NCBI GenBank assembly: GCA_047495785.1
Contig: JBLDXI010000019.1
Coordinates: 930,001 to 994,000, forward strand
Direction of reading: 5' to 3'
Length of the DNA stretch: 64,000 nucleotides
Source: Lepidodermella squamata
Taxonomy: Eukaryota > Animalia > Gastrotricha
Under the pieces are notes generated by a model. That model did no database searches, had not been told where the DNA came from, and saw nothing but the letters and a program-made list of their open reading frames with translations. The position numbers and the translations under genes are program-made. Every line of letters begins with the position of its first letter. Position 1 is the first letter of the stretch. Below are positions 9,452 through 22,334 of the stretch, piece after piece.

Positions 9452-11941
9452 TCAATCTGTCATCGAGACTTTATTCGGATCAAATTTATCCGCAAATTTG
9501 GGCACTACGCCGAAGAGGACTATCGGGGCGCTGATAGCCAGGGTTCCAGCGATCGTCATGAGAAAATTGTCGATAACTCGAGAAACGTCCTGCCACGATT
9601 GGAAAAGATATCGGCTATTTCCTGTCACTTTCGACGCCATCTCCAACGTGATTTCGTCACTGCTTTCGGCATCACCTAAAATTTTAACAGGGCTAGGCAC
9701 GATTTGTCTCGATAACTTATTCGCGTTACTGGCAGCTAGGATCATTCGTGAATTTTCGTAGTTATGCCCCCAGTAGCTGACCATCGACTGGGTGTTGTTC
9801 GTCATCTTGGAAAAGCCTTTATCAGGCTGCCAAACTAGGGGTGCATTCATGCGATCGCTGTATGCTTCATTCAACTTGTGATAAATCGGCGCTGTGGATG
9901 AGATTGATGAATCATCGCGCGACAAGGTCAACTTCGGAATCGGAGGCGGGGTGCAAGATTTGCAAGAAGACCGCCGCCTCGGAGCCATTGCCGGGTGGTC
10001 TATAATGACACATTCCAAGGGTTGGCGGACATTATTTTTAGCATTGGCTGGCTTGCGACGGTTGCGGCACATCATGCAACAAAGAATGAACTTCGGATGC
10101 GGTATTCGGGTCAGCCATTGCGGCATTTTTCGCTTTTGTTCAGCGAAAATTGCCATTTTTGCGACCAGGATTGAAGTGACAACACTGAGGGCCGAAACTA
10201 TGACCACTGTAAAGATGTAAATAGTCAATAGGGGCACGTCCGTCGATGTGCTAGGCTGGAAAACAAGAATAAATTTTCTTCATAGCAACCGTTGCTAAGA
10301 AAAAGCGTCATTTTTTCAATGCCTTACCAAGTGTGAAATAGCGACGGTTTGAAACACAACTACAGATAGCAAGGTTGTAGTCGACGAGCCAACACGTTGG
10401 GGATGGGTGACAGGCACGAGGAAGAACATGATTTGAACACCTGACAGAAATACGGCTGGTAAGATGACGTTGAGTAGGTGATAGATTTTCGCGCGTTCGA
10501 TGTGCAGGTAGAACTGGACGCGGGCGAATGCCGTTCTAGCTCCGACCTGGTTCATGCTTGAATAACCGCCCCAGTGTATAAGTTGCCAAGTTTCGCCGGG
10601 TAGGTACATGCGAATGTCGACTGGCGTCTTCTCAGATCGGAGTGTTATATTCATGAAACGAATGTCCAAGGTCGGGCTCTCAAATACGAACCTGAATGAA
10701 AATTTGTTGATATATTGTAGCCCCTAAGTTGAGCAAATAACCACAGAAAATAGGCGGAAAAAGGTCTCAAAAAAGTCTGAAATCAGAGCTTTCTCAAAGC
10801 CAAAAAAATGAGAAGGCTAATCAGCTTTTCAAATGGAAAAAAATCGGACAAATTTGCCCCATCGGGTAAAATACCGATCACTTACCGACCAATTACCATC
10901 GGGTTTTTCGGATATTCTCCTTCTAAGTTTAAGCGTTATTGAAATCGCGGATAATTGATGGGAGATGCTATTAATGGGTTAAATTTTGAAAAATGTGCTC
11001 GCGCAATTTTTGAGACACGAGGTATTAGTAGGCAGCCTATTATTTACCAGCAAGTCTGTTTATCGAATGGGAAGAATCGAAGGTTGAGTTTGCAGTATGA
11101 TTTTACGATACCAGTCGGGTGCCACCAAAGTCTGCCGGTATGTTCGACTTTGATCTCGAATCGAGTGTCTCGTATCACATCGTAGACATCAGATACACTA
11201 TTCCTATAAGAAAAAATAGTGGAGTGAATTTTGGTAAGAAATTTTTATTTTTACAGAATTGCGATGTCCGGAGTCCAAAGAGTATTGGCACTTACTACGA
11301 CCTCGGTCACATTTGCGAATAGCTTCGGATCCCAGCTCAGTCTTTTATCTTGCCAGGTCTTTGTTATCGAGAAAAAATTAGTTTGGAATTTAGGTTATAA
11401 GGCGTCACCTACCAGTTGTAGTCGTACAGTCGTTTCCAAAACTTCCGATTTCTCAATTAGCTCTTGAATTTTCAATGGGATCAGTGTCATCTAAAGACAA
11501 TTTCTAATAGGCAGAATGAGTAAATTTTGCATTTTTTACCTTGACATTTATGGGCCCTTCGTCTCTGTTAGGGTGTTTGAAAAACGGATTTCCCAGTAGC
11601 TCGATGACATTATGCCGGCCGATGGCCAGGGCAGTTCGATGGCCAGCAGTTGGATATCCTGCTACTTCCATATACTGATTGATGTTATACAGCTGCTTGT
11701 TCAGACTTTGCGACGGGCTGGCTTTTACACTTCCATTCCTATTGCCATCTTTAATCAATGAATCATCAGGATTCGCAGGGTTATTTGTGTTAGTCGCGTT
11801 TGATTGTAGTTTGCTTGAAGGTGCACCAGAGCGTAAATGCAAAACTGAATGCCCGGCTATTGTTAAAGGCTTGAAAACACCCAAATCTGTCGAAAGGGTA
11901 GAGTGGCAAAAATTTGCTAGCAGAAGAGCAATGACCAGCAT
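9452..11941 (-). CDS. Cys-loop ligand-gated ion channel subunit (nAChR-like, non-alpha), about 6 exons
   Basis: Signal peptide; spliced exons give WQDKRLSWDP..LWTPDIAIL, the Cys loop CKLNLRFFPFDKQTC, M1-M3 (YHLLNVILP, TTTLLSVVVFQ, PSTSTDVPLL) and M4 (VSRVIDNF). Confidence 0.93.
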
Positions 11942-12312
11942 TTTTAGCTCGAAAAATTTCTACTCAAACTTAATCGGTAAAAATGAACCAATGCAGCCGA
12001 TAAAACTGGGTAAAATGACCAGTTCCACTCAATAATTATTCAATTTCAGCGGCTTTGAGTCGGGGGAAAAAACGATGTCTCTAACCGGCAAAAACGATTT
12101 AACCTCTGCTCATGAACCCCGAGGCACTGTCGAGAGTAATTTTTGACAACTGACGACAATAGCCAATCTGGCAGCTGACAAATCAACCATTAGAAAAAAT
12201 ATAGCGTCCTCAAAACAATTTGGAAAATTTTATATCTCGATTAAAACCGCGTTATATTACATAGAAAAATGACATAACAAGGCAAGGATGAGTCGAAAAT
12301 TGATGATAAGTG

Positions 12313-13597
12313 TTATTTTGCTGTAGTTTTCTTGGCACTCGTTTTTTTCTTGGCTTTGCCAACCGAACTAGGCTTCGAGCTGACCGAAAGACCAGAAATC
12401 GATGAAGTCGTAGAAGCACCACCGGCTGAAGTCGACGCGCCAGCTTCACTGCCTAGTTTTGACTTCTTAGTCGTGGGCAGCAAAACATTCTGAATATTCG
12501 GCAGGACGCCACCCTCGGCTATCGTAACATCGGACAGCATTTTGTTCAGTTCTTCGTCGTTTCGAACAGCCAGTTGAATGTGGCGAGGTATGATGCGCTT
12601 CTTCTTGTTGTCCCGAGCGGCATTTCCGGCTAATTCCAGCACTTCAGCAGCCAGATACTCCATGACAGCAGCCAGATAGACCGGGGCTCCACTTGCCAGC
12701 CGGTCGCTGTAGTGACCAGCGCGAAGCATTCGCTTGATCCTTCCGACTGGAAATTGAAGACCAGCCTTCGAACTGGATGAGCGAGGCGGCTGCTTCGATC
12801 GGCTGCCACTTTTCCCACCTCGATGAGCCGGTCTCGAGAAGCTACTCGACGGCAGCCGGTCTGGCATCGACTCGGAGACGACAGGTTCCTGCCTGGGTTC
12901 CAACCTGGTACCAGTACCCAACTCCGGTAGACTAGATGAAAGTAACCCATGATCGACCATCTCTTCAGCGGAACGAATTGAAGGTTGGGTCAGCGGCGGG
13001 CCATCAGCGACTTCATCTTCGTCAAGGTCGATCGAGGGTGATTCACGGGCCACAGGAGCAGCAGGTTCCAACTCTTGTTCTGGCAAGGTCGCCGGCGTCC
13101 CCGGGTTCATGGGGCCTGGCGTTTCAGGGCGCGATTCCGGTACTTGTTGCGGGACTGGCTGGGTGAAAGGAGGTGATCCAACTCTCGGCTGTTCAACTGG
13201 ATCGTCTTGTGATGAGGGTGGAGTAGAAAACTGCTCGTTTTCTTCGGCGTGAAGTGAATCGTTCGCGGGCGCTTTATCTTCGTTTTCTTGATCGTGATCT
13301 GTATCCATGGCGTTGTCATCGCCGTATTCGGCTGGTTGAGTTTCAGCTATGCCTTCGTCGTTATCATCGGGTTCTTCAATTTGAGGCGGCTCGTTAAAGC
13401 GAGGTTGGCCGTCGTCTTCTGGGGCTTGCTGATCTCCTGGAATCTGATGCAAAAAAAACGCTTAAAACCGAACGAAAATTGAAATGAAATAGGCATACCG
13501 GAATAGTCGCAATGGTCTCTTCTACGACGGAGTGCGATTCAATACGCTGCGTGAAAGCCAGAATGTAACTACCGGCTGATTGCCGGTGCAAATCCAT
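12313..13597 (-). CDS. Histone H2A variant with very long acidic/Pro-rich N-terminal extension and Ser/Lys-rich C-tail (exons 13597-13499, 13443-12313; about 409 aa)
   Basis: Clear H2A fold: [72 protein letters not shown]. In-frame phase-0 intron. Confidence 0.9.
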
Positions 13598-14497
13598 TTT
13601 GTTTAGTGACTTTGAATAGATTGATAATAGTTGGAAAATTCGCCATGAATTCGCTTTTTATCATCCAAGCCACGAATTTGCACAGCATAAGTTGTGTTCC
13701 TCAAGCTGAAATTTGTTGCGCAACACCGCCTATTGTTGCGTCTTCGCTCCATTTTTGTCAGAGCCACCAAAACAGGGACGCGGCACCAGCCAAAATCGGT
13801 TATCATCATCATTTCAAATGATTAAGAAAAGCTTTCAATTATTCCGTCATAACTGTTCGAATCTCACGGAATCAAAGGCAAATGCTCGGCTGAGGAAATA
13901 TCTCGGAATTATTGGGAATTTTCCGAAAATGTCTCGGTGTTTTCCATTTTTCAGTTTTGATCAGAAAGATGCATGCGAAATGTGAAGAAAATAAAAAGCC
14001 TTGAAATATTGATTCGCAAAAATAACATGGTACACCATATACTTTTGATAATTACAGCGAATAAGTGCGCTACCGGGTGAGCGGAAAGGTTATAAATTTT
14101 CGCAAATAAACACGGTCTATGCGCGATTATTACGACAACTGATCAAACAAAAAGCGAAATCGAGAGATGAAGCGCGCGCGCGGGAGGCACGCGAACGCCG
14201 ATGATGATGACACTTGTTATGTTTACTTTTCGCTATAGCGCGTTGTAAAATATACCTATCTACCTCGAGTTGACTCCTCCTTAACAATATTATGGCAAGG
14301 CAGCGATGGTTGGATGGCACCTTTACTAATAAGTTGGGCAAATAATTACGCCCATTATCATCATCGCCGCCGTCGTCGCAAAAATTAGTCGCATGGTCAT
14401 TTTATATACGAGGTAATAGTCGTCACTTGACTTTTATTAGTGCGTTGTGCGAGCAACTCTCATAAGTAGCACTTGAACGCAAGTCGACACCTCGTCG

Positions 14498-15554
14498 ATG
14501 ACGACAATAAAAACAGGAAAGCGTAGGTCAGCCAAGGCGATGAGTGGTGGCAAGTCGCCGGAACCCGGCGGCCAATCAGGTAGCATCGCCTTGCCACCCT
14601 TCCACTCGCTGATATCCCTCGACGCTGCTGCTAAAAACTCGGCATTTTCCTCGCCAAGCGCTTTCACCTCAACAGCAGCTCTATCTACCTACGAACAGCA
14701 ATACCGTGAATTTTACCAGTCTTCTTGGAACAGTAGCAACAACAACATGTCAAGCGCAGTTCCAGCTTTCAGCGGAAATAATCAGTACAGCACGTCTGAC
14801 GCTGAATTCTTCTACACTGCCCAGCAAATGGCGGCGCAGTTGTTCGACCAGTACCACAGCAGTCAACAGCAGTCGAGCTATCCCAACTCATCTCAACAAC
14901 AAGACTGCAGCTTCTACCAGGCCGCCGCTAATTTCCCCAGCAGCGACGGTGATGCTGCGGTTAGCTTCTACCCGTCTGGTTTGGAAAACGCTGCGTTTCC
15001 ACATCAGCATCACACTTCGGTTGGCATCGGCAACTTCCCGTGGGGTGATCTACACAGTGGCTTGAATAATCAGAATAGCAACGGCAGCCACACTGATAAC
15101 AGTTACTCGAGTGAAAAATCTTCGTCGCTAATGCCGAATTCGTCTGGCGAGAATGGGTCCGAATTGCAAGCTCTTACTGATAGACAAACCGTTTTCATGC
15201 TACCCCCACCCATCAACTATCGCAGACGGAATGAGAGGGAGCGAGAGAGGGTTAGTTTAGCTCATAATTAATTGACCTAATTATATTGTTGAATTTGTCC
15301 TTCGACTTTAAAGGTTCGGTGCGTTAATGACGGCTATTCCCGACTTCGCGAAATTATTCCAGCTCTTAGGACTCGTCAAAAAAGGATAAGCAAGGTAGGA
15401 ACTTGAGTCGTTAAACTGATTTAATCACATTTTAAAACAAACGAATTATTTTAAGGTGGAGACCCTTAGAGCTGCATCTCGTTACATTCGCACGCTTCAA
15501 GAAGTTCTTGGAATGGCGCCGAAACCGAAGTCGAGCAGCAGCCGCAAATCGTGA
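14498..15554 (+). CDS. Achaete-scute family bHLH, ASCb (ASCL3/4/5-like) (exons 14498-15250, 15314-15394, 15456-15554)
   Basis: Spliced bHLH reads RRRNERERER|VRCVNDGYSRLREIIP..KRISK|VETLRAASRYIRTLQ. Confidence 0.9.
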
Positions 15555-15859: not shown

Positions 15860-18712
15860 TCACCTATGGTGGTGGTGGCCATGGTGATGTGATGAAGAAT
15901 GGTGGCGGTTATCTTTCGAGTCCTTTTTATGACCGCTATTGCTGCTCGAATTGCTATGACGACTACTCGAGTCGAGGTTATAATTATCTGACCGGCCGTT
16001 GGGTGACCGAGAACGCGACCGCCTCCAACTGCGGTCTTTATTGTCACTTGAGCGACGACGATCCTCATCCCTCGTGTCAAGCCGCTTATGCTTATCTCTG
16101 CCTCGACTCAGACTCCGGCTACGACTCCTAACAAAAAATCGAAGAGAATTTTATTCGCATTCAAAATATGAGAAATCCCCCTTAAAATTATCGTCAAGTT
16201 TTTCCCAGTTAAAAATTATAACAGACCGTGATTTATCGCGTTTTTTGCACTTTTTCTTCTTTCTTTCGGAGTCTTTCGAATCTAAACTGTCAGATCGAGG
16301 TGTCGACGAGTGACCTTTCAGCCGGCTCGAAGATGCGGGTGGAGATGGCGGTAGTTCAATACCTTCAGCTAAATATAAAATAAATTATTTTTGAGTGAAA
16401 GTACAATTTAACGCACCATCAGCGATGTATCGATTCGCCTTTCTTGGCCAAGCGGCGACTTTCGCTTCGATAGACCGATGTAGCTCCTCGTCAGAGTCGG
16501 GTTCTTTCATCGGGGTAGCTGAGGCTTGTTCGCTTTCATCATCCTCTTCGTCATCACTGCCATACTCGACCAAAACTGTAAATTCGATTAGCCAAAAAAA
16601 CAGAAAAGGTGAATCAAAAGTTCGATATAAACAAGCGGTGGGTAAACTCCAAGAATGCTGCGATAATTGGGAGACAAATGACATTGAGAGAAATCACGTG
16701 ACAAGACATTGAAAAATGCGAGTTTTTTCAAGTTTTCATTTTTATTATTTCGAGATGAAAGACGTGTTTAAATTTGAGCTAAAATTAGGCGTAACTGTAT
16801 ACCTGATGTTTTTCGCAAGTTGGCAGCGGTATTAGTAGAAGAGCTACTTCTCACCAACTGGACGACTTGTCGGCTCGACGAAGCTTCATAATATCGAATG
16901 AAAGAGATCGGCCATATAATATTACAACAGTAGAAAAATTTGTAAAAAAATAAATATGTTATATATATATCACAACAAAATTCAAGTTATCTGAGCTGCA
17001 AGTCAATCAAATAGTCACGCGATTCACAGTTTTAGGTAGCAAGAACAAACCGGTTAGCTTTTGCTTTGCCCGATCATGAACTTCACCTGCCACAGCTTCA
17101 ATTTCGTCATTTGTCACTTGAAGCAAAATCTCAGTCATCCACGTTCGAATTTTATTCATCTGGAATTTCAAACCTTATGTAATTGGATAAAAACATGCAA
17201 TTAAATCCTACCAAAATTTGCTCGCGATCGACTTTTTCCACTTCCGGTTTGACATCAGGTGAGGCTTCCGCAGTGTCTCTGAATCGGCTCGGTTGGGCCT
17301 GATGGGAATTCTCATTATTGGGCAATGCTAATGCAAAACACTTTACCTTGTGATATCTTTTCTCCGACTCGTTTGAATCGGCGTTTTCTTCGGGCGGAGG
17401 TGGGAATTTAGCGTAAACGCGGCCATTTCCACTTCTTTTTTCGCTCTCTCGATCTGATTCGTCGTCATCATCATCGTCATCAAACTTGCTACCGGCCATC
17501 TCGCCAGACATCAATTTTTCTAAATTCTGTTTACGATACGCATCGCGCTGTTTTTCGGCCTCGGCTTTATTCGCCTCGCGAGCTTTCTTCATTTGCATCT
17601 CCTCGATCTCAGCCTTCAGCCACGACGGCAGTTTCCTACCACCGCCTGAGCTGTTGAAGCCGCCGTCTCCCAAATCCGATTCCGAATAACCAGCCGCATG
17701 GGACGGGTCCATCAAAAGTGGCGGCAGGTGATTTGGTTCGGCGTGATAGCCGTAATGAGGCGTTGGGGCGGACCCAGAACTGACCACAGGCGGTAATTGA
17801 TATTCCACTTCATAGTGCTGACTCGGCGGGGACGGAGGCGGCCTGGGCAGGTGAGAAATCGGCATTGGGACGCCGACAGACACTGACGGGAACAAAGCTT
17901 GAGGCGGCGGGTGATGGCCGTTACCATTCGAGTTGAAATCCATCGGCGGCCGGGGAGGTGGCGGGTGATGATACACCGGCGCGAAAGATGGCGGCGGTTC
18001 ATGCCGAGGAGGAAAAGACGCGTGATTGTGCGCAAAATCTGGGTGTTGGTGATGATTATGAGCGAAATCAGGCGGCGGATGGTGGTAAGGAGCCGCGAAA
18101 TCGGGATGATGCTGAGGCGGGCCGGGGTGTCTAGCTGAAAAATCCGGCGGTGGAGGCGGCGGGGGTGGTGGTGGAAGATGGAATCTCGCATGGTGAGCCA
18201 TTCCATTGCCGTTCGCCAAATGGTGTTGAGGTGGCATAGACTGCTGATACATCGGCTGGCCAAAATGTTCATTCATAGGGGGCGGGCCGGAATGCGGTGG
18301 GTGTCCCATTTGCGGGTGAGATGGTGGGGGCGGTGGACGCTAAAAATACCAAAAAATCGATTTTACAACGAAATTAAAGTCAAATCTGAAAGTGAAACCT
18401 TGACTCCCCGTTTTTAATACAATTTTCCAGATCAGTGTGTGAAATCTAACATACCGTAAAGACTGGAGGCATCGATTGCGGTGGCATCGAAAATTGTGGA
18501 TGGGGTGGCGGTCGAGAGTGTTGTTGATATCCATACGGATCAGAGGGTGGCATTTGATGAGATGGTGGTGGAGGCGGGGGCGGTTGATGAAAGGGAAACT
18601 GGCCAGCCGGAGGCGCATCTGCTCGCTGGTTGGCCCATTGCTTCGCCAACTGAGCCCAGTCGACGCCATTGGGCGGCTGGGGCGCGGCTTTGTTACCGGG
18701 CGCAGTCCACAT
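15860..18712 (-). CDS. PNISR: PNN-interacting serine/arginine-rich protein, multi-exon
   Basis: VDWAQLAKQW, RKLPSWLKAEIEEM, MTEILLQVTNDEI and YGSDDEED motifs; RS-rich last exon with stop at 15860. Confidence 0.85.
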
Positions 18713-19007: not shown

Positions 19008-22000
19008 TTATCTCGAAGTCTTTCTTGACGAGCGGTCGTCTTTTTCTGAAAATTTAGGGTAGCTTTCGGGCGCGGCTGAAGTCTGCGCTTCATGACTGAG
19101 GGCGGTTAAAAATTCCTCGAGTCGGTCCTGCATATGGCGGACGCATTTCAGCTCCTCGGCCAGTTCGACTCGGCGACCAGACAAAAGTTCACCGAGACGC
19201 CTGCGATCGTCGCCAATCGCGTCTAAATCGTCACGGGCCTCGGCCTCGAGCCGCCTTAATTCAGCACTAGATAATTGCTGCCTCAACGCCACAGTTGTAT
19301 TTTCCAGCATGCCGCAAAGACGGTGGAAGAGCACCACGGAAGAGCAGCTGCGGTCAACGCCGGCTGATTTCAGAGGCGAAACGCCGCCATTGGTTCGCTC
19401 ATGTTGATACAGCGTGAAAGCTTTTTCGCACAAATCAGCCTCGGCCAGCAGCCGGCGAGCCAGTTCGCGCCTTCTGACGTTGTTCCATACTTGTTGGTAG
19501 GTTTCTTTGTTAATAGTGTGGCCGCATTGCGATTCGGCACTTCGTTTGGCAGCTGTTAGGTCTTCGCTAGAGAGCAAACCCGCATCCTAATAATTACGAA
19601 AAATTGTATTAAAAACATCGAAATTCAAGTTAGGGCCATAGCTTATCAGCTAAAAATCGAAGTCAGTTCGAATTTTCAAGAAATTTAATTGAATCCTATC
19701 AAGGATTTACGCCTAAATTTACCCAAGGGCGAGTCATTATTTTATTTTCGATTTCACTAAGGAGTCCCAAACCAATCATACTGACTCATATTTCTTCCGT
19801 AATTTCAACGAATATCACAAGAGAAAATCTTACGGCGGTACCAAATTTCATTCAATTCAATACCTAACCATTTTATTCGGTTTTTAACTGGTTAGGGTTA
19901 GGTTAGGGGTTAGGGTTAGAGGCTGGGCCTTGAAATTTGGGATTTGAACTGATTGGAATAATTTGGAACAGAATCCAATGATGTACTGAATTCAACAACT
20001 TGGTAATGAATTCACTATATCCCATATGGCAAAGAAGCAAACCTTGGTTCGACTAGAAACGCCGCTCCAATCCCGATCTCGAACCGCGACAAGCATTCGC
20101 TCGATTTCATGCGCTAGCGTCTTCGCATCGTTCTGCTCATCCGTCGGCCTTGGCTTCCATTTCACCCACTGGTCAACAGCCGATGGGCCAGACAATTGCG
20201 ACAATTTAGCACTTGCGTCTTGCTCAACCGCCTTAACAGCTTTCCGCAACGCGTCGACAGCAGTTTGCCACTGAACTCTGGTATGAACGGCCCCGTCGTC
20301 CAACGCAGTGCGCTGAATTACTCTCAACGCATCCTCAGCTTTCGAGTCCCATTTATGCTTCGAAACTGTCTCGGTTTGAATAGCAGTTCTAACCCCGGCG
20401 TAAACTGCGTCGGAAGCACGTGCTGGGTCGAGGGCTTGGAGAGCAGCGCTCTTCAAAGTCCCGAGACCGGCATTGACGCAGGCGCGAGGTAACTCGCCAC
20501 TATCGGCCCATTGCCGCAGACGAACATCGACAATTGTATCGAATTGATTAACAGACTCAGCAGCTGGTAGTAACACGTTATCAATGATGAAAGGCGCGAG
20601 GTGTTGCCACAACTGAGCGGCTAAAACGTCGTGCCAATGCCGGGGCGGTAGCATACTCAACGCGGCCAATTCATCCAAAATATCAGCTCGGGCTCGGTCG
20701 AATAACTCAGCGCGTTCTAATTGGCGATATCTGCCGAAAGAATTCTTCCACTCGGTTTCCAAATTGTAACGCAGGGCTCGTAGTGCGTCGGACTGTTGCG
20801 CACTCGACTCGCGAACCATGCGCCAAAAGCACTCAGAAACAGCCATAGCCAAGTTATGAGTAGTCAACTGGGTCGGTTTTACAATACCAGTGCGGAAAAC
20901 TTTTGAGCCAGTGAAAAAACTCTGCTCATACTCCTGAATCTCCTTGATAGAAGCAGGCGAATTTCCTTTACCGGTTACCACAGCGAAATAGCCCAAAGCT
21001 TTAAGTTGGAATAGCCGGCCCTCCAAAATTTGGGAAATTCGATTTGTATTGGCGAAAGTCGATTCGGCTAAATCAGCTTTTGTCATCACGAAAATTGTCC
21101 TTTTACCTTCTTGATCAGCCTGCGAGACTAAATCAGTCACCGCATTCCGCTCAGCATCAACACTGCCGTCTTGCACACATAGAATAATAGCACTGGGATT
21201 TTCGAGGTATTGCCGGCAAATTGATTGAATTTTCTCGCGAGTTCCACCCGCCATTCCGTAGGTTTCGGAGTTGATTACTCCGGGCAGGTCGATTAAAACC
21301 ATGCGGGGTAATCCAGGGCCTTTAACGGTCATAGAAATGCATTCGGGTGATACTGTTTCGCCCTGGGGAATGTTGGCTTTCATTCTTATTTCAATCTCCT
21401 TCCTCAACGCGCTCAATTCATCCTCACGGGTTAAATCGAATTCTCGAGGCGAGTCTTTGAAAAACGCAATGTGATATGGGCCCTCTGATAGGGTGACTTT
21501 AACCGGCGTTCTGGTCATCATTTCGCCGGAGCCACGTGGAAAAATGCGGGCTTTTGCGATAACCTCAAGAACTGACGTTTTTCCTGAACTCTGATCACCG
21601 ACTACAACGACCCTGGGCAGGTGATCGTGCATGCTGTACTGACTGCCGAGTTGTTCAAACTCGAGTAGGTCGTCTAGAACCTCGGAGTACATATCTATAA
21701 GTGGTTTCCTGACCCCGCGGCGTTTGCCGGTTTTCGGGTCATTGCTGCTATGGTGGCTCTCTTTGCTGGCTAGCATCTGAGTTTCGCGGCGCAGTTCGCG
21801 ATTTTCGCGCTCGAGCCGGTCGATTTCGCGCTGGTAGCGCACTTGAATGTTCATAACGTCCTCTTGCGGTTGTTGCTGCGGCTCGCCTGTGGTACGAGCG
21901 GCAAATGCAATTAGAGGATTATTAATTTTCAGCCCGGACTCACCGGATTTCACAGCAGTTTTCACTGTTTCTAACTCGCCTAAATCTGGTTTTGACTCAA

Positions 22001-22334
22001 TCGCTGCGTTCGATTGTGTAACTCTATCGAACCAAGCTGATGTAGCGGATTGTAATTTGTTCATTTTATCGCGGATAGCGTCCAATGCCCCGCCATCTCC
22101 GACTTCGGGAAGTCGGATGTGAAGGGAGGGCAGTTGAATGCCCGAAACTGAGGCGTAAAACTTTCGAATTTGCTCGCGATCTGGCAGCTTGTTAAGGAAG
22201 GGCGAGAAATCAGGCATCGCCTCACGCACATCTTCGTACTTCTGATGAACGTAGGCGCCGCCGCCCACGGCACCCCCGACTGCCAAGTATCGAAGTCGCA
22301 GTAATCGGAGCGCGAATCTGGCAGCAAAATTCAT
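19008..22334 (-). CDS. OPA1: Dynamin-like mitochondrial GTPase OPA1 (exons 22334-20043, 19586-19008)
   Basis: LRLRYLAVGGAVGGG, LIDMYSEVLD, LPRVVVVGDQSSGKTSVLE, GEMMTR, DLPG and TKAD motifs; C-terminal ELKCVRHMQDRLEEF. Confidence 0.97.
19832..19977. mobile_element. Small MITE-like insertion carrying TTAGGG-like repeats, in the OPA1 intron
   Basis: ggttagggttaggttaggggttagggttag at about 19890-19919, bracketed by the inverted pair ccaaatttca (19841-19850) and tgaaatttgg (19931-19940). This intron is much longer than most in the window. Confidence 0.5.

Follow-up and report, generated by a model that had tools for sequence, protein, structure and literature searches.

The 64-kb stretch of DNA analysed here, referred to as the window, harbors on its minus strand a gene encoding a giant histone H2A, in which a recognizable H2A fold is embedded between long additions at both ends (Table 1). 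The start codon lies in the context AAAATGG, and the frame is bounded upstream by an in-frame stop codon at 13660-13658. The segment separating the two exons is the sole GT..AG pair that joins both frames in phase, and would represent a phase-0 intron whose acceptor AG (13445-13444) follows a T-rich run. We infer this 55-nt intron from the frame, the GT..AG boundaries and the indel pattern between two DNA forms of the locus (see below). The splicing anticipated in the original prediction is therefore supported by boundaries, phase and indels, whereas no spliced read across 13499/13443 is present in the sequencing run X2, one piece of which extends ~15 nt into the intron.

Table 1. Features of the giant H2A locus (positions in the window)
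Feature	Positions	Strand	Remarks
Giant H2A gene	13597..12313	minus	two exons, 409 codons; product of 43.7 kDa, pI 4.87
5′ flank, possible mRNA leader	13598..13767	minus	non-coding; upstream ATGs at 13688 and 13646
Exon 1	13597..13499	minus	ATG start, 33 codons; from ORF listing and sequence
Intron, inferred, 55 nt	13498..13444	minus	GT..AG, GTATGC...TTTTTTTTGCATCAG
Exon 2	13443..12313	minus	376-aa part of the product, closed by TAA
Acidic Pro/Gln-rich extension, aa 34-225	12868..13443	minus	from composition and variant pattern
Basic H2A N-tail, aa 226-259 (MPDRLPSS...)	12766..12867	minus	from alignment with H2A domains; net charge +7
H2A fold, docking domain and LLPTTKK, aa 260-360	12463..12765	minus	from Pfam and PDB phmmer
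Ser/Thr/Lys-rich C-terminal tail, aa 361-409	12316..12462	minus	from translation and composition
TAA stop codon	12313..12315	minus	3′ flank without histone stem-loop

Upstream of the gene, a 69-codon ORF (13812..13603, minus strand) terminates 5 nt ahead of the start codon; this region is regarded as non-coding because the two DNA forms differ by a 1-nt indel at 13689. If the X2 coverage up to ~13752 represents mRNA, the two upstream ATGs share one frame and open an ORF that overlaps the main ATG. In a leader as long as this coverage suggests, they would hinder translation from 13597, and a transcript start closer to 13597, or the addition of a spliced leader directly after ttcaaag (13611/13610), would eliminate them. 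At the other end, neither AATAAA nor ATTAAA occurs within ~400 nt of the stop codon. A possible splice donor, gca/gtgaag (GT at 12449-12448, minus strand), is located at the very beginning of the Ser/Lys tail, and the X2 coverage of the gene ends at 12446, 3 nt beyond this GT, which could reflect the use of a different 3′ exon or merely sparse coverage.

The gene stands alone. Neither motifs of H2B, H3, H4 or H1 nor a second H2A are found in the 64 kb, which also lack repeats and a second copy of either the extension or the histone part. The histone 3′ stem-loop, whose absence had been predicted, gave no Rfam RF00032 match at E <= 1 within 11000-15000, and its consensus occurs nowhere in the 64-kb window. 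As a solitary gene with an inferred intron and no stem-loop, it possesses the features of a replication-independent variant, as the original prediction had considered probable. The neighboring genes are ordinary animal ones, comprising a Cys-loop receptor exon, a bHLH-like ORF and OPA1, and these neighbors, together with the intron and the lack of repeats and of a second copy, led us to reject a viral or mobile-element origin of the histone.

The Cys-loop receptor is represented by a transmembrane exon at 9452-10237 (minus strand), and OPA1 by exons of the dynamin-like GTPase (Dynamin_N and OPA1_C) at 19008-22334 (minus strand), with an unusual single uninterrupted exon of 780 codons. Divergent from the H2A gene, an ORF at 14498-15271 (plus strand) encodes 257 residues rich in Ser, Gln and Asn; this exon alone has no Pfam match, and its terminal RRRNERERERV resembles the start of a bHLH basic region interrupted by an intron. 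A further ORF at 17152-18309 (minus strand) encodes a Pro/His-rich protein of 385 aa with an acidic, Lys-rich C-terminal part, which belongs to no Pfam family.

Coding constraint across the 409-codon frame

In the public DNA run X1, the locus (positions 11700-14500) is present in two forms at ~70x each, which differ by ~5% in the coding sequence and by ~10%, in addition to many small indels, in the flanks. This divergence indicates either very high heterozygosity or collapsed homeologous copies, and comparison of the two forms measures constraint whether they are alleles or homeologues. The classification covers 40 listed differences of the 98 between the forms, and three more indels lie beyond those listed. 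Among the listed differences in the extension, 15 are synonymous and 7 non-synonymous (pN/pS ~0.14, P = 9e-6 under neutrality), and third codon positions hold 16 of these 22 (P = 2e-4). All six listed in the fold are synonymous (P = 0.00027), as are all three listed in exon 1, each at a third position (P = 0.014). The C-tail, with one synonymous and two non-synonymous listed differences (P = 0.61), provides too few to judge. The listed coding indels, +3+3 at 13075/13076 and -9 at 13355, are all multiples of three. In the proposed intron, the listed indels are -3, -2, +1 and +1; the upstream flank shows -1 at 13689 together with -9 at 13780, and the downstream flank shows -4, -3 and -2.

This signature of codon positions, synonymous changes and indels therefore shows that exon 1 and the extension are coding and constrained in this very frame, and the same differences and indels mark the sequence upstream of 13597 and the 55-nt segment as neither. 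Moreover, a stop-free frame of 192 codons would arise by chance with a probability of only ~2e-5 at this base composition. Transcripts starting just ahead of MPDRLPSS, which would leave the extension untranslated and which the original prediction had raised as the scenario fatal to it, conflict with the coding signature seen in exon 1 and the extension, and an untranslated extension is rejected on the same codon-position and indel pattern. A pseudogene is likewise rejected, as both DNA forms preserve the open frame. Altogether, the comparison of the two forms shows that the whole 409-codon frame, including the leader and the extension, is protein-coding, with purifying selection on exon 1, the extension and the fold.

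The sole other run holding parts of the locus is X2, a run of 2015 whose label “RNA?” is a guess. Its patchy coverage of 12446-13767, at depth 3-25, has an upper end near 13752-13767 and is deeper over the conserved fold, where reads of other H2A genes add to it. Over 11794-12357 and 13768-14425, ~1.2 kb of intergenic flanks, the depth is zero, and coverage resumes at the neighboring genes. Many X2 pieces are >99% identical to the window and mostly carry the letters of the second X1 form, so X2 should derive from the same or a nearly identical organism; given the genic-only coverage of such an organism, it is probably RNA rather than DNA. These features suggest that the H2A gene is transcribed. 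No X2 read bridges the junction between the extension and the fold, where a gap spans 12828-12921, and the codons of the C-tail are also without coverage.

The H2A core and its class

Database and structure analyses were performed with the 376-aa exon-2 product, and exon 1 was analysed separately by script. Pfam search revealed the domains Histone_H2A_C (PF16211; 4.7e-16) and Histone (PF00125; 5.7e-14), and a phmmer search against PDB chains yielded E values of ~1e-52 to 1e-63 against canonical H2A and H2A.X. The 60 best chains are all canonical H2A, H2A.X, H2A.J or plant H2A.6, with neither H2A.Z nor macroH2A among them. The fold shares 76-82% identity with twelve H2A domains over 97 fold columns. 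The H2A fold that had been predicted within a protein of ~409 aa is thus recovered, as are all other sequence elements of that prediction, at the positions it gave. The core keeps the motifs AGLQFPVGR, GNAARDN and NDEELN, and the acidic-patch residues E262, E267, E270, D296, E297 and E298 (exon-2 numbering) occupy invariant alignment columns, matching E56, E61, E64, D90, E91 and E92 of human H2A.

About 15 substitutions are found at otherwise conserved H2A positions, clustered in α1 and the L1 loop, where RVHRLLRKGNYAERVGAG is rewritten. L1 is the contact between both H2A copies in one nucleosome and a usual place of variant-specific change. Other substitutions in the core are KKTR to KKKR, GGV to SDV, IAQGG to IAEGG and LLPKKT to LLPTTKK, of which the third replaces a Gln that is a known methylation site, and the last shifts the ubiquitination lysines by two residues, as the original prediction had correctly observed. 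As judged from these alignments, the core retains the residues for H2B pairing, DNA binding and acidic-patch display, and the α1-L1 region, one docking-domain residue and both tails have been rewritten.

The protein ends in KKTTAK rather than SQ(E/D)(Y/F/I/L), and no SQ occurs in its C-tail; Pfam detects no macro domain, and the added mass is N-terminal. These results agree with the original claim that the protein is neither an H2A.X, which would end in SQ(E/D)(Y/F), nor a macroH2A. None of the 60 best solved chains is an H2A.Z, the S/TPKK motif of H2A.W is absent from the C-tail, and, in place of the domain expected of a Tetrahymena H2A.Y, neither leucine-rich repeats nor any other Pfam domain is found outside the histone region, the surrounding sequence being predicted as coil by AlphaFold2. 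By defining features, the giant H2A is accordingly assigned to none of H2A.X, macroH2A, H2A.Z, H2A.W and H2A.Y at the sequence level. An H2A.X that has lost its motif was also rejected, as the tail shows no similarity to H2A.X chains in the PDB alignments, which reach no further than ~12-16 residues into the C-tail, to positions 148-156 of the 189-residue query. A long C-tail of the bdelloid H2Abd type, as described in PMC2642717, is present in the form of 49 residues following LLPTTKK.

Comparison with known systems places the giant H2A among histones bearing large additions. Like macroH2A, it is roughly threefold larger than an ordinary H2A and encoded by a spliced gene located outside histone clusters, but the extra mass of macroH2A is C-terminal and consists of a basic linker and a folded macro domain, whereas that of the giant H2A is N-terminal, acidic and unfolded. 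In Tetrahymena H2A.Y, the addition is also located at the N-terminus. It is likewise a large non-histone part joined to an H2A, namely a unique leucine-rich-repeat domain (PMC3380720); however, this ciliate domain is folded and has phosphatase-regulating activity, in contrast to the acidic, disordered arm described here. Plant H2A.W similarly carries a long basic Ser/Lys-rich C-tail on a normal core, which is thought to bind linker DNA (PMC6125630, PMC3380720), but it forms a plant clade, has S/TPKK motifs and lacks an N-terminal extension, whereas the giant H2A tail contains SKPS, TSAKK and GKAKKK. The function of Arabidopsis H2B.8 resides in a long disordered N-terminal region, with expression in sperm and dry seeds (PMC9668745, PMC11351261). 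It differs from the giant H2A in being an H2B whose disordered region condenses chromatin by phase separation, and the two share no sequence relation.

Further parallels come from rotifers. Bdelloids possess lineage-specific H2As with a canonical-type core, namely H2Abd, H2Abd1 and H2Abd2 (also H2A.1-3), which replace canonical H2A in these animals (PMC2642717, PMC3380720). Their genes have short introns of 52-76 nt, H2Abd2 is without a stem-loop, and none of the variants ends in SQ(E/D) (PMC2642717). Compared by description, they share with the giant H2A the long unique C-tail beyond LLPKK, the short intron and, in H2Abd2, the missing stem-loop, but a long N-terminal extension has not been described for them. 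Numerous H2A paralogues also occur in monogonont rotifers, with 13 counted in B. calyciflorus (PMC3701536). Given macroH2A, H2A.Y, H2B.8 and the bdelloid tails, long additions on core histones are not new in principle, whereas the architecture of the giant H2A is.

The acidic extension and the tails

The product starts with a leader (aa 1-33) that is non-acidic and fairly hydrophobic, with a net charge of -2. The following extension of 192 residues contains 47 Asp/Glu against 8 Lys/Arg, in addition to 32 Pro and 15 Gln, giving a net charge of -39; a Pro/Gln/Thr-rich middle part is flanked by two strongly acidic blocks. All five SP/TP sites of the 409-aa protein fall inside the extension, which also has one SQDD. 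The acidic arm is separated from the H2A N-tail by a neutral linker rich in Ser, Leu and Pro (aa 201-235), and the N-tail aligns as a rewritten but recognizable remnant of the canonical SGRGKxGGKxxAKAKSRSSR. The C-tail beyond LLPTTKK comprises 20 Ser/Thr and 9 Lys/Arg in 49 residues and terminates in ...TSAKKTTAK. Both the D/E/P/Q-rich extension with several SP/TP sites and the Ser/Lys tail of ~50 aa therefore correspond to what had been predicted. The N-tail, fold and C-tail together carry a net charge of +20, against -39 in the extension and -2 in the leader.

In the AlphaFold2 model of the exon-2 product, which was computed from a 13-row alignment and has low confidence throughout (mean pLDDT 51), helices occur only at 233-304, corresponding to the histone fold, whereas residues 1-232 and the C-tail are coil. 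Consistent with this, the extension and the C-tail lie on the disordered side of a charge-hydropathy plot, and the leader and the fold on the ordered side.

For the extension, no relative was found by word search with residues 1-205 in 5.8 billion proteins, by phmmer against 1.84 billion representatives, or in JGI metagenome contigs and the ESM Atlas. These blanks are weak evidence, because the animal's own proteins are absent from the libraries, as seen from the protein having no match to itself. A metagenome scan with the distinctive segment comprising the N-tail, α1 and L1 returned only generic H2As of 46-72% identity. Word searches with the full-length protein or the fold alone yielded neither an orthologue nor a useful classification, and both are uninformative because mis-annotated tandem H2A-H2A models, from fishes among other sources, reach doubled bit scores and outrank everything. 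Thus, no rotifer, other animal or microbe that has been sampled shares the extension at detectable similarity. The orthologues in relatives that the original prediction called for did not emerge from the protein, metagenome and ESM Atlas searches, from whose libraries this lineage is missing. The new variant class that it proposed is not established, since these libraries yielded no orthologue from any other species. In a full-text literature search, no animal H2A was described as having a long acidic arm at its N-terminus, which in itself does not prove that none has been reported.

Proposed function, alternatives and significance

We conclude that the H2A variant encoded here is real, restricted to its lineage, replication-independent and new in its architecture. 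A 409-codon coding frame with constraint on exon 1, the extension and the fold, a conserved H2A core, and a rewritten α1-L1 region, docking residue and pair of tails are results in which we have high confidence. That the gene is a functional, single-copy variant of this kind and also acts by the nucleosomal mechanism outlined below is, as a whole, somewhat better supported than not.

We propose that the conserved fold would allow the variant H2A to dimerize with H2B and enter nucleosomes. The disordered arm would then project from the exit point of the H2A N-tail, bearing ~40 net negative charges and five sites for proline-directed phosphorylation. As a tethered polyanion tunable by phosphorylation, it might repel neighboring basic tails or compete with DNA for them, resulting in looser chromatin that is open to H1 or other basic proteins, with weaker fiber compaction, or in competition for linker histone. 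Alternatively, the arm might serve as a docking platform that recruits partners. The Lys/Ser-rich C-tail might bind linker DNA at the entry/exit point, similar to plant H2A.W (PMC6125630) and the bdelloid tails (PMC2642717), and the changed L1 loop might favor particles with two copies of the variant. H2B.8 is a precedent for a disordered histone region that changes the chromatin state (PMC9668745), and DNA-binding long C-tails of H2A have precedents as well (PMC6125630, PMC2642717). A role of the arm as built-in chaperone or in decompaction, both suggested by the original prediction, is pure inference, and expression in the germline, egg or dormant stage would be a guess. Moreover, an arm with a net charge of -39 beside a basic histone could hinder rather than permit nucleosome assembly.

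The main rival explanation takes the arm as a propeptide or self-chaperone, which would neutralize the basic part during storage or transport, as in eggs or spermatids, and then be cleaved or displaced at deposition. Mature chromatin would in that case hold an H2A of ~20 kDa with only the long C-tail added. Histone chaperones hold H2A-H2B by acidic disordered tracts, and precursor forms exist for some sperm nuclear basic proteins. Such a segment would fit equally well with the nearly balanced charges (-41 in the extension and leader against +20 in the remainder) and with the otherwise complete H2A N-tail behind a neutral linker, and an extension that is selected yet without a fold also agrees with it. 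However, neither a cleavage site nor a protease motif was found, and we know of no other core histone from which an acidic propeptide is removed; we consider this explanation unlikely, although the three that follow are less likely still.

One of these assumes two products, with H2A made mainly from an internal start at M226 on a shorter transcript and the upstream frame encoding a separate acidic protein or a minor isoform. M226 immediately precedes the complete H2A N-tail, the X2 gap at 12828-12921 falls on the junction of extension and fold, and the upstream ATGs in the putative leader would disfavor the start at 13597. Against this, the frame is continuous, so that a separate acidic ORF would run into the histone without a stop codon, purifying selection acts on the extension in precisely this frame, and the gap is one of several where X2 coverage is thin (depth 3-10), which together make two products improbable. 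It is more doubtful again that the protein is a non-nucleosomal derivative of H2A, with a soluble H2B-binding or regulatory function. The ~15 substitutions at conserved positions, including the L1 loop and the Gln-to-Glu change in IAQGG, and the overall pI of 4.87 would suit such a protein, but the core is 76-82% identical to H2A and retains the DNA-contact arginines, the acidic patch and the docking domain, and fully synonymous differences in the fold (six of six listed) are the conservation expected from nucleosomal constraint. A young chimera or annotation artefact without lasting function, formed by an H2A retrocopy in frame behind an unrelated open stretch, would explain a solitary gene with no known orthologue and an extension that is an orphan in every search, but it is the least probable of all, given a frame kept in both DNA forms with coding indels of 3n only, purifying selection on the extension, exon 1 and fold, and exons cleanly joined by a phase-0 intron.

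Returning to the nucleosomal variant, its fullest version can be offered only tentatively: a kind of animal core histone not described before, namely a nucleosomal H2A with a full, selected acidic arm of >200 aa ahead of an intact H2A tail, the arm acting either as a phospho-tunable polyanion that opens chromatin, excludes linker histones or holds basic proteins, or as a self-chaperone for storage in gametes or dormant embryos.

Eukaryotes build chromatin of differing physical properties mainly by means of histone variants. An H2A dragging ~40 net negative charges from the exit of its N-tail would be a natural experiment on a tethered polyanion, and would bear on nucleosome stacking, linker-histone binding and the handling of histones. 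If the arm is a removable or self-binding chaperone segment, it would represent a new solution to the storage of free histones. As the gene is small, single-copy and easily expressed, direct testing is feasible. In addition, the giant H2A is a further instance of the unusual freedom with which H2A has diversified among rotifer-like animals (PMC2642717, PMC3701536).
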